Shown here one piece after another: positions 7,165-10,578 of a stretch of DNA of 64,000 bases. How positions within the stretch are numbered: the stretch's first letter is position 1; the number at the start of each line of letters is the position of its first letter. A program made the translations under genes and the position numbers. The notes under the pieces are model-generated. The model ran no database searches. It saw only the letters and a program-made list of their open reading frames with translations, and was not told the origin of the DNA. This DNA comes from Ramazzottius varieornatus (Eukaryota; Animalia; Tardigrada): positions 6,872,448-6,936,447 of the forward strand of contig BDGG01000002.1 in assembly GCA_001949185.1 (NCBI GenBank). Direction: 5' to 3'.

Positions 7165-9515
7165 ATGTGTGGAATCTGGGCATTGTTCGGATCGCCGTCT
7201 GCCGATGTTTTCAAGTATTTAGATGCATGCTTACGGATAAAGCATCGAGGTCCAGATGCATTCAGGATCGAGGGCGATCACCATCTTCCGCACAGCTGCT
7301 TAGCATTCCACCGGCTATGTGTTGTGGATGATTTGCATGGAATGCAACCGTTCCGCTTGCGAAACTTCCCTTTCCTGTATCTGCTTTACAACGGGGAGAT
7401 TTATAACCATCGACTGGTAAGTTTATGGTTTCGCTGGCAATTACAGTATAGTCTAATCGTTTCGTATATAGTATTTTGTCAGTTCGCGCCTGACGTCATG
7501 GTTCTGAATGGTGTACAGTAATATATGTGTGACGTCAAGCGTCAACAGGGCTGGACATGTTTGGCTCGTTGATTTGCAATTTCGCACTACAAAAGCACAG
7601 GAACCTGTCGAGTTCTGCTCGTAGATCCAAGACGAGCACAACTTTGTCTATGAGACCGCTCTTGACGGAGAGTGCATCCTTCATCTGTACAACAAGGGAG
7701 GAATGGAGTACTGCGCACAGCAGCTTGACGGCGAATTTGCCTTTACGCTCATCGATGCCGAAAAGAGGCAAATATATGTGGGAAGGGACACGTTTGGAGT
7801 TCGACCGGCGTTCAGGATGACTATCAAGGATAAAGGAATTCTTGGAATTTGTTCCGAGGCGAAAGGTAAGTTCCTGGTTAGCCTACGAAGTCTGTTAGGG
7901 GCGTCTACTGTAGCAAATGCCCTCACTTCCGGTTGAGTTCGGACTTAGACCTCTGGTATTCAAAAGCCTATTCGGTTGAGAGAAACTTTCCTTTGATGCA
8001 GGTTTGATCGACCTTACGTTGAAAGAAGAGTACGTGGGAGCCAAAATCGAACCGGTACCACCTGGAAAGATCGAAACCTACAGTATCGATGAAGATGGGC
8101 AGGTCCACCTGTTGCATAACAAGGCATTCCTGAAGACCGGCGAAGTGCCGAAATATCGAACACTGGTGACGAAGTTCGGTACCATACCGCACCTTACTGA
8201 ACTTCGTCTTGTGACATATACCATAAGTTGATTGTTTTGTAGAAGATGACCCGCTGAAGAATGTGGAGAACCTTCTTGTGGCCGCCGTGCGGAAACGCTT
8301 AATGGCGCATCGCCGTATTGGGTGTTTCCTGTCTGGCGGATTGGATTCTAGCCTGATCGCAGCCATCCTCGTCCGAGAAGCCAAAGCTGCGGGCATTACC
8401 TATCCCATCCAGACATTTTCGATCGGCATGGAAGACGCGCCTGATGTATTGGCAGCCCGAAAAGTAAATCTATTCACTATAAACCCCTTGGTTTATACGA
8501 GTGAAAGTGCTTCTAGTGCTTCCTTGTAGTGAAAATAAGTCGAGCCGAACTGTATTTACTTGTAGGTAGCAGCACATATCAAGTCCGAGCATCACGAAGT
8601 CATTTTTACGACCGAGGAAGCACTAGAATCTTTGGAACATGTCATCTATCATCTGGAAACTTACGACATCACGACGATCCGAGCTTCAGTTGGTAAGAAG
8701 TTAAATACCTACATCGTCGAAGGGTGTTTTATCATTGTGCTGTTTGTGTTTCGTAGGAATGTTTTTGGTTTCGAAGTATGTGAGAGAAAAGACAGACACT
8801 GTGGTCATGTATTCCGGTGAAGGTGCGGACGAACTTGCTCAAGGCTACATCTACTTCCATAAAGCTCCTAACTCAAAAGATGGACACGAGGAAAGTATGA
8901 GATTGATGAATGACTTGTACCTGTACGACGTCTTGCGTACTGACCGGTGTACCGCTGCTCACGGCCTGGAAGTACGACCACCGTTCCTGGACCACCAGTT
9001 CACATCTTACTATCTTTCGTTGCCTAAAGAAGATCGCATACCGAAGGAGGGTATTGAGAAGTACTTCCTACGAAAAGCGTTTGCCGGCCAGAATCTTATT
9101 CCGGAGGAAATCCTTTGGCGACCGAAGGAGGCTTTCAGTGATGGCATTTCCACGATGAAGAAGTCGTGGTTCCAAGTTTTACAAGAGCACTGCGCTACTT
9201 TGGTCAGTTAATCTTTGATGTTTCAATTCCAGAAAGTATGCTCGGCTTCTTAGCTTGTTTCTCTTGTAGATAAGTGACGCTGATTTCGCTTCACGGGAGA
9301 AATTCTACCCACATTTGACGCCGCCCACCAAAGAAGCTTTCTACTACCGGAAGGTCTTCGAAAAGTACTATCCAGAAAGAGAGCAATGGATACCATACTT
9401 CTGGATGCCCAAGTGGTCTCCCAATGCGACGGACCCTTCTGCACGAACGCTGTCCAACTACAAATTGACAACAACCGAAGAGGGAGCTCACCCAGTACAA
9501 AATGGTAAACTCTAG
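7165..9515 (+). CDS. ASNS: asparagine synthetase (glutamine-hydrolysing), multi-exon
   Basis: N-terminal MCGI (class II GATase nucleophile Cys), [41 protein letters not shown] and RPKEAFSDG. Confidence 0.96.
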
Positions 9516-9662: not shown

Positions 9663-10578
9663 CTAACGTCCACGTGGAGCCTGCTGATGGTTAGTGAACC
9701 GCTTATATTCCGACTCATCACGAACTGTAATCCAGAAAGTTATTGGTGCCGGTTTGTTGAGTCATGTAGGAATTCTACAGAATGATGAGCTTACGTTTGA
9801 ATACAAGGGAGAGGTCTTTTAGCATCAAGGTCTGAATCAGGATGGCGAACTTCCGTGGGGGCTTCAGAGAGCGTTGAATAATAGACTTACCACACGTCGT
9901 CCGTGGATAGCGCACAGGTTTGCGTCCTCAAACATCGAAATCATAAAATGTTTGGACCCTCCTGCAAATCCATCGCCGAATTCTTATCTGGTGCTTCTAT
10001 GGCCGAGTATTGTGGTTCCCATATTTGTGTGCATGATGGTGATAAAACTACTGTAATAAAATTATTCGTACATGTATAGCATTTAAGGCTTCGGACTGGA
10101 ATCTGTAATCGGTTCCGCCGGTACCTCGTGACCCACTGTCGCGCGTCCTTTCCGCCACTACCTTCTGCGTTACCTCTCTCACTAATCTGTGAGAAGGTAG
10201 CTTCGAGATCAGTAGCTGCACTTGCGACTGGAACCTACGGATCTCTTGCAGAGCAAGAATACCGGGTTTCTGACGAAGTTTCCTCCGACTCTTCTCGAGC
10301 TGACTCTGGCGACGCCCACTGGCCTATGGAATTTACGCACTGGATCACGTCTGCGGTACAGTATACGCAAGAGACTTTTACTCAGAGAACATACGTTCTA
10401 ATTGTCTTACTCGGTTACTCGTACTAGGGTTTCGGTCGTGAGGACTGTTGGGAGTGATCAGAGGAGACGCAGGGCTCCGAGGTCTTCCGGAGGTGCTGGG
10501 CGCTTCTGAGTGGCTTAACGGTGGTTGGAGGCGAACGAAGTCGGTTCTGCGGGGATCCGTTTGCTTGTTGCGTGGCAT
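9663..10578 (-). pseudogene. histone H3 variant, CenH3/CENP-A-like, 5 exons, with one 1-nt frameshift (pseudogene or homopolymer sequence error)
   Basis: Exons 10578-10411, 10323-10072, 9961-9891, 9831-9795 and 9724-9663, all with GT-AG introns. Translation: MPRNKQT...[71 protein letters not shown] / (E)GSKHFMISMFEDANLCAIHGRRV / TLMLKDLSLVFKLRDE, which is an H3 histone fold. Exon 3 is 71 nt, one short of keeping the frame. Confidence 0.85.

Follow-up and report, generated by a model that had tools for sequence, protein, structure and literature searches.

CenH3/CENP-A is the H3 variant of centromeres, where it is deposited by HJURP/Scm3. In most animal and fungal CenH3s the residue F84 is replaced by tryptophan. 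No description of tardigrade CenH3, CENP-A or H3 variant genes, or of RvY_05687, was present in the literature that we searched. The window, the whole stretch of 64,000 nucleotides of the Ramazzottius varieornatus contig BDGG01000002.1 that was analysed, contains on its minus strand an H3-fold gene of five exons (10578..9663; contig positions 6882110-6883025) at the RvY_05687 locus. This gene has in common with human CENP-A, yeast Cse4 and Drosophila Cid an H3-type fold, a longer loop 1, replaced Q68 and T107, and a long tail that aligns with H3 over its first residues only. It differs from them in several ways. It has F84, while the named CenH3s in our panel have W, and it starts with the H3-like MPRNKQT. 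Its C-terminus is a basic extension of 15-20 residues rather than a short hydrophobic end. It groups with a multi-copy tardigrade family, its frame is broken, and the classical marks belong to another locus, L013. The comparison with H3.3 is also mixed. Like H3.3, the window gene is spliced, with an intron in phase 0 behind residue 93, and no histone 3′ stem-loop is detected. Unlike H3.3, the window gene has a tail of about 75 residues (42 in H3.3), an insertion of 14 residues in loop 1, many substitutions in the fold and the C-terminal extension.

On balance, sequence comparison favors a reading in which RvY_05687 is the only genomic copy of an old long-loop-1 sub-lineage in a tardigrade-specific H3 family, recently inactivated or decaying, with the CENP-A role fitting L013.

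Gene structure and fold residues

Reading of the three frames and exon-by-exon translation give the following features, in window coordinates.

Exon 1, 10411..10578, minus strand: start codon and 56 residues of Pro/Ser/Arg-rich tail, MPRNKQT...STSNR
Intron 1, 10324..10410, minus strand: 87 nt, GTAAGA..ATAG, phase 0, private to this gene
Exon 2, 10072..10323, minus strand: 84 residues covering the family motif, αN, α1, loop 1 and the start of α2, ending with AIH, whose H occupies position Q93
Whole loop-1 region, 10105-10173, minus strand: 14 residues longer than in H3
Loop-1 insertion core, 10114..10155, minus strand: 14 residues
Intron 2, 9962..10071, minus strand: 110 nt, GTACGA..GCAG, phase 0, after position 93
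Exon 3, 9891..9961, minus strand: 71 nt, the remaining α2 and loop 2, with the signatures SMFED and HGRR
Frame break, 9957..9961, minus strand: codon 94 GAG (9961-9959), codon 95 GG alone (9958-9957), then TCC
Intron 3, 9832..9890, minus strand: 59 nt, GTAAGT..TCAG, phase 0, after V117, private to this gene
Exon 4, 9795..9831, minus strand: 37 nt, TLMLKDLSLVFK and one further base, α3
Intron 4, 9725..9794, minus strand: 70 nt, GTAAGC..ACAG, phase 1, after K129
Exon 5, 9663..9724, minus strand: end of α3 and C-terminal extension (L)RDESEYKRFTNHQQAPRGR, stop codon TAG at 9665-9663

The coding parts sum to 590 bases, and one additional base gives 196 amino acids and a stop. All four introns are of the GT..AG type and measure 59-110 nt. 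Among 1.84 billion cluster representatives, GAU93804.1 (RvY_05687, "hypothetical protein", 147 aa) matches best. Its residues 1-56 are identical to the translation of exon 1, and its residues 57-140 match that of exon 2 at 100%. It joins STSNR to ASGRRQ at exactly the position of intron 1, in agreement with this intron. After exon 2 it runs on into VRIILLQ, which is translated from intron 2, and ends before exon 3. As a protein of 147 aa, RvY_05687 is mis-modelled: its gene extends over five exons and, as assembled, is broken. The histone frame of exon 3 reads (S)KHFMISMFEDANLCAIHGRRV. Intron 3 is placed by its splice signals and by the homology on either side of it. The paralogs do not have the two private introns: L002 and L004 show a single open frame across the position of intron 1, and HGRRVTIMPRD is uninterrupted in one exon in the paralogs, without intron 3.

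Pfam PF00125 matches exon 2 with an E-value of 1e-9 and exon 3 with an E-value of 0.004. The motifs PGxxALxEIR, RLVRE, RFQ, FEDxNLCAIH and KD are in H3 register, and the predicted protein is a member of the histone H3 superfamily (PF00125, H3-type fold). A preliminary description had proposed a five-exon gene for an H3-fold protein of about 196 residues, with an MPRNKQT start, a C-terminal extension and an exon 3 one base short at a GGG run. The rebuilt model agrees with it on each of these points, and codon 95 holds two bases in the assembly. An Rfam scan found no histone 3′ stem-loop or other RNA family at the locus.

Two further observations concern the surroundings and the splicing of the gene. 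The 3′ exons of an asparagine synthase gene lie at 8738-9515 of the window on the plus strand (PF00733, E-value 3e-35), convergent with the histone gene, and the two stop codons are about 150 nt apart. A transcript that skipped exon 3 would connect exon 2 directly with exon 4 (9795-10072) and stay in frame, with phase 0 at each boundary; the product would be without residues 94-117 and would have no workable histone fold.

The tail matches H3 only at R2, K4, Q5 and T6. LPSHRL replaces LPFQRL, with S and H codons for F67 and Q68 at 10189..10194 on the minus strand. F84 is retained (YRFQ) and T107 is replaced by A. The change of LPF to LPS, Q68H, T107A and the retention of F84 had all been noted before and read the same in our alignment. 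Among 33 aligned H3-type sequences, F67S is found in the window gene alone. P121L and G132D are off the family pattern as well, which counts towards decay. Loop 1 between E73 and R83 has 23 residues compared with 9 in H3. The long loop described earlier stands, with an excess of 14 residues where about 13 had been given.

Tardigrade family of long-tailed H3 variants

We searched the genome assembly (55.8 Mb, 200 contigs) in six frames, with exon 2 and the α2-α3 exon of a paralog as queries. About 16 H3-type loci were found, including the following.

Canonical H3: L008-L010
H3.3: L007
Odd H3 variants: L006, L011, L012 and L015
Long-tailed MPRxKQ group: L002 on contig C6, and an array on contig C1 with L003, L004, L005 and probably L028

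At least five loci of R. varieornatus besides the window gene belong to the long-tailed family; Hypsibius has two members, and further members are environmental. The family is marked by the MPRxKQ start, [AS]G[KR]Rx[ST]QxEK before αN, PG[IV] in place of PGT, LIPK, SMFED and HGRR, and by a C-terminal extension of 15-25 residues after [LI]R[GD]. L003 starts with MARTKQ, unlike the MPRxKQ of the other members. The window gene has all of these marks except that LIPK is LISK and RG is RD. Extensions trailing LKLRG/IRG and comparable to that of the window gene are present in L004 and in the Hypsibius proteins P0022 and P0028.

The Hypsibius exemplaris proteins OWA52022.1 ("putative histone H3.3", P0022) and OWA50995.1 ("putative histone H3", P0028) are members of the same family. 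They share with the window gene the MPRxKQ start, AGKRSxQxEK, PG[IV], HGRR and the extension after LKLRG; P0022, but not P0028, also has SMFED. In contrast to the window gene, they exceed H3 by no more than 1-3 residues in loop 1, keep F67, Q93 and E97, and have open frames. With the P0022 fold as query, fused gene models of canonical H3 dominated the search, and no useful names came out. Searches against PDB sequences ranked canonical H3 at the top for the window gene and L013 alike, and hence are non-discriminating.

The intron positions are partly shared. A phase-0 intron after residue 93 is present in every spliced H3-type gene checked in this genome, canonical H3 included, with a GT after the codon (Q; H in the window gene) in L001-L004 and L007-L011. 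The position and phase of intron 4 (phase 1, after K129) are common to L004, L005 and apparently L003. In the exon-2 tree (59 columns), the window gene pairs with the environmental sequence P0003 with support 81/73. This pair is nested in a clade (88/94) with the family members of R. varieornatus, Hypsibius and JGI and two Logan proteins. Because of this clade, the family motifs and the two shared intron positions, a lineage-specific H3 variant, which was one of the readings offered in the preliminary description, fits best, and the window gene appears to be a member of a long-tailed H3 variant family restricted to tardigrades.

P0003 is the closest relative of the window gene. It is an environmental fragment from an ENA metagenome contig, 94 aa long, equivalent to exon 2 only and 54% identical. 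Its loop 1 aligns with that of the window gene without gaps over 23 residues, of which 10 are identical, and has the same length and the pattern AExxRxSGSxxxGxTxYxFQ. Unlike the window gene, P0003 keeps LPFQ (F67, Q68) and Q93. The assembly contains a single copy of the window gene, and the closest paralog reaches 57% identity over 58 residues. These observations, together with the loop-1 insertion in P0003, give no support to a recently dead duplicate, the second of the readings proposed earlier. Since P0003 shares the insertion and there is no close paralog, the long-loop-1 lineage is old rather than the product of a recent duplication. A word-based search with residues 57-140 of GAU93804.1 returned the self-match only, and metagenome scans with exon 2 alone and with alignment A1 gave no relative.

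Other loci show related variation. In L005 (C1:5901434-5901822, minus strand) the frame changes inside loop 1, with REIAGK and a stop followed by MKLDIRFQ, and FQD and HHGS are present; it looks like a second broken copy of the family and would fit birth-and-death turnover. L006 (C23:80978-81187), another H3 variant, has a tail rich in glycine, and its loop 1 exceeds that of H3 by about 9 residues (NIVASEDNVRVNAPEGYKFQ); together with an environmental relative, P0127, it makes up a clade of its own (98/97). In L012 (C6:2045910-2046369), α1/loop 1 and α2 are in different frames and there are odd residues (DIHRLRESYHLLISK), so that it is possibly a decayed copy. P0092, a protein of 209 aa from a Logan contig, is a near-ortholog of the L002 variant and shows that a close relative of R. 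varieornatus is represented in the public archives, where the window gene had no counterpart that came to light.

Frame break in exon 3

As assembled, the spliced frame reads EGPNIL* and terminates after six codons of exon 3. None of the canonical GT-AG alternatives, the tandem CAG/GAG acceptor among them, brings back the histone frame. The frame break is probably genuine, although it may instead be an assembly or consensus error. Since the published R. varieornatus assembly is built on Sanger sequence and has 160x Illumina coverage, a mistake over only three G is unlikely, though possible. Two further exon junctions follow the premature stop, and because of this the spliced transcript would be exposed to nonsense-mediated decay.

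The residues around the break point to decay. The window gene has four private changes at near-invariant sites (F67S, Q93H, A95G and E97K), the maximum in our panel, and three of the four adjoin the frame break. The sites of F67S, Q93H and E97K are constant in all other compared sequences. Other features are those of an intact gene. After the break the histone frame is open for 55 codons, for which the chance is about 0.07 by a rough estimate with uniform codons, and the family signatures persist in the downstream exons. The terminal branch of the window gene in the exon-2 tree equals that of P0003 (0.47 in both), so no acceleration is visible. With the break and the private changes on one side, and intact splice sites, an open downstream frame and kept signatures on the other, the lesion is either very recent or an error.

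These same features make it possible to argue that the gene is intact and functional, with the missing base an assembly error or a polymorphism. The 196-aa long-loop H3 variant would then mark specialised chromatin, such as that of germ-line cells, embryos or animals under stress. The whole splice sites, the open frame, the retained SMFED, HGRR and C-terminal extension, the branch length equal to that of P0003 and the conservation of the loop-1 insertion in P0003 are all consistent with this explanation, which we nevertheless hold to be unlikely. It is opposed by the Sanger and 160x Illumina basis of the assembly over so short a run, by the changes F67S, Q93H and E97K at otherwise constant sites, and by the public model GAU93804.1, which stops short of the break. 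In addition, no longer protein with the exon 2 of the window gene was found among the 1.84 billion cluster representatives, and only one match there is below 1e-30. A more specific version, which we think rather improbable, would have eutardigrades keep an undescribed long-tailed H3-like family beside a classical CENP-A. The window gene and P0003 would be an old branch of this family in which the conserved basic, serine-rich RxSGS insertion of 14 residues in loop 1 serves as a phosphorylatable surface handle of a specialised nucleosome; the R. varieornatus copy would be intact and the break an error.

The favored reading is recent inactivation or ongoing decay. In its intact form, the 196-aa protein would pair with H4 through the H3-type histone fold. 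The insertion of 14 residues, rich in Arg, Ser and Gly, would be exposed on the surface of the nucleosome, next to loop 2 of H4. The short loop-1 bulge of CENP-A occupies the same place on the nucleosome and is read by CENP-N. The insertion may have been a handle for a reader protein or a kinase, and the conserved RxSGS core of this basic, serine-rich segment resembles the sites of basophilic kinases; any such function is purely conjectural. In the broken form most of α2, loop 2 and α3 would be missing. Such a product could not form a histone-fold dimer, and it is for this reason that the window gene is read as recently inactivated or decaying.

L013 and the centromeric histone

The remaining reading in the preliminary description was a centromeric histone with an assembly error. 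It had in its favor the long loop 1, Q68H, T107A and the divergent tail, and the window gene indeed has three of four CenH3 sequence hallmarks. The losses of Q68 and T107 do not discriminate for CenH3, because paralogs that are not CenH3-like share these changes. F84 is kept, and L013 fits CENP-A better.

L013 (contig C3, around 3663045; L013:866-1782) encodes the whole fold in one exon, with PFSRL, T107A, a loop 1 extended by 6 residues relative to H3, KMWQ (W84) and a C-terminal DFF. The upstream tail exon is GPRRGTPRSTARKS, which recalls the MGPRR start of human CENP-A. Many of its best non-tardigrade database matches are named CSE4 or CENP-A, and a Hypsibius ortholog is present. No R. varieornatus protein for L013 is among the best 120 matches listed, and the locus may be unannotated or mis-modelled in the public set. 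L013 is likely the true CENP-A ortholog of R. varieornatus, and the window gene is probably not a CENP-A ortholog. A window gene that is the centromeric histone and carries an assembly error is unlikely in view of this separate locus with W84, PFSRL, a longer loop 1, a hydrophobic C-terminus and an ortholog in Hypsibius. GAU99461.1 is reported as an HJURP ortholog of R. varieornatus (PMC13001451); the searched text of that paper does not say with which H3 variant it was paired.

A histone-fold phylogeny, proposed earlier as a way to settle the CenH3 identity, gives a partial answer. The best tree places the window gene in the tardigrade variant family. The W84 sequences (16 in the panel, L013 included; the window gene reads YRFQ instead) form a separate group of CenH3s in the exon-2 tree with support 82/76. 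The family and these CenH3s lie on one weakly supported side of the tree (68/82). On the short alignment, AU tests gave p 0.13 and 0.11 for a window gene grouped with the CenH3s and p 0.16 for one grouped with canonical H3; none of these placements is rejected. When the tree was calculated from the full fold, with the window gene left out, the family (100/96) was a clade distinct from the L013 type (99/97); both are common to Ramazzottius and Hypsibius, and both sit on an unresolved star.

The entire MPRxKQ family might be duplicated centromeric histones, like the Drosophila Cid paralogs, with L013 as another paralog or a different variant. The shared side of the exon-2 tree is compatible with this, as are the AU tests on the window gene, the loss of Q68 in most members, the PFSRL found in several as in CENP-A, and the lost T107 and long, divergent tails of all members. 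We consider it improbable. F84 is found in nearly all members, whereas the named CenH3s of the panel have W; Hypsibius P0022 shares about 65% identity with canonical H3 over its fold; the tails keep the H3-like MPRTKQ and ARK motifs; and the C-terminus is a long basic extension and not a short hydrophobic tail. The full-fold tree is a star, and L013 is a better candidate for CENP-A. That the window gene is the sole functional centromeric histone of R. varieornatus is scarcely credible despite its long loop 1, Q68H, T107A and divergent tail, as its frame is broken in the assembly, F67S falls in the conserved LPF, its nearest relatives are non-W84 variants, and L013, conserved in Hypsibius, fits CENP-A better.

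For the window locus alone the practical outcome is modest: the RvY_05687 model needs correction to five exons. Annotation of the centromeric histone is also helped, with L013 and not the window gene as the candidate. Tardigrade chromatin draws interest through Dsup and stress tolerance. A lineage-specific H3 family beside a CENP-A-like gene would offer a useful entry point to tardigrade-specific nucleosome biology.
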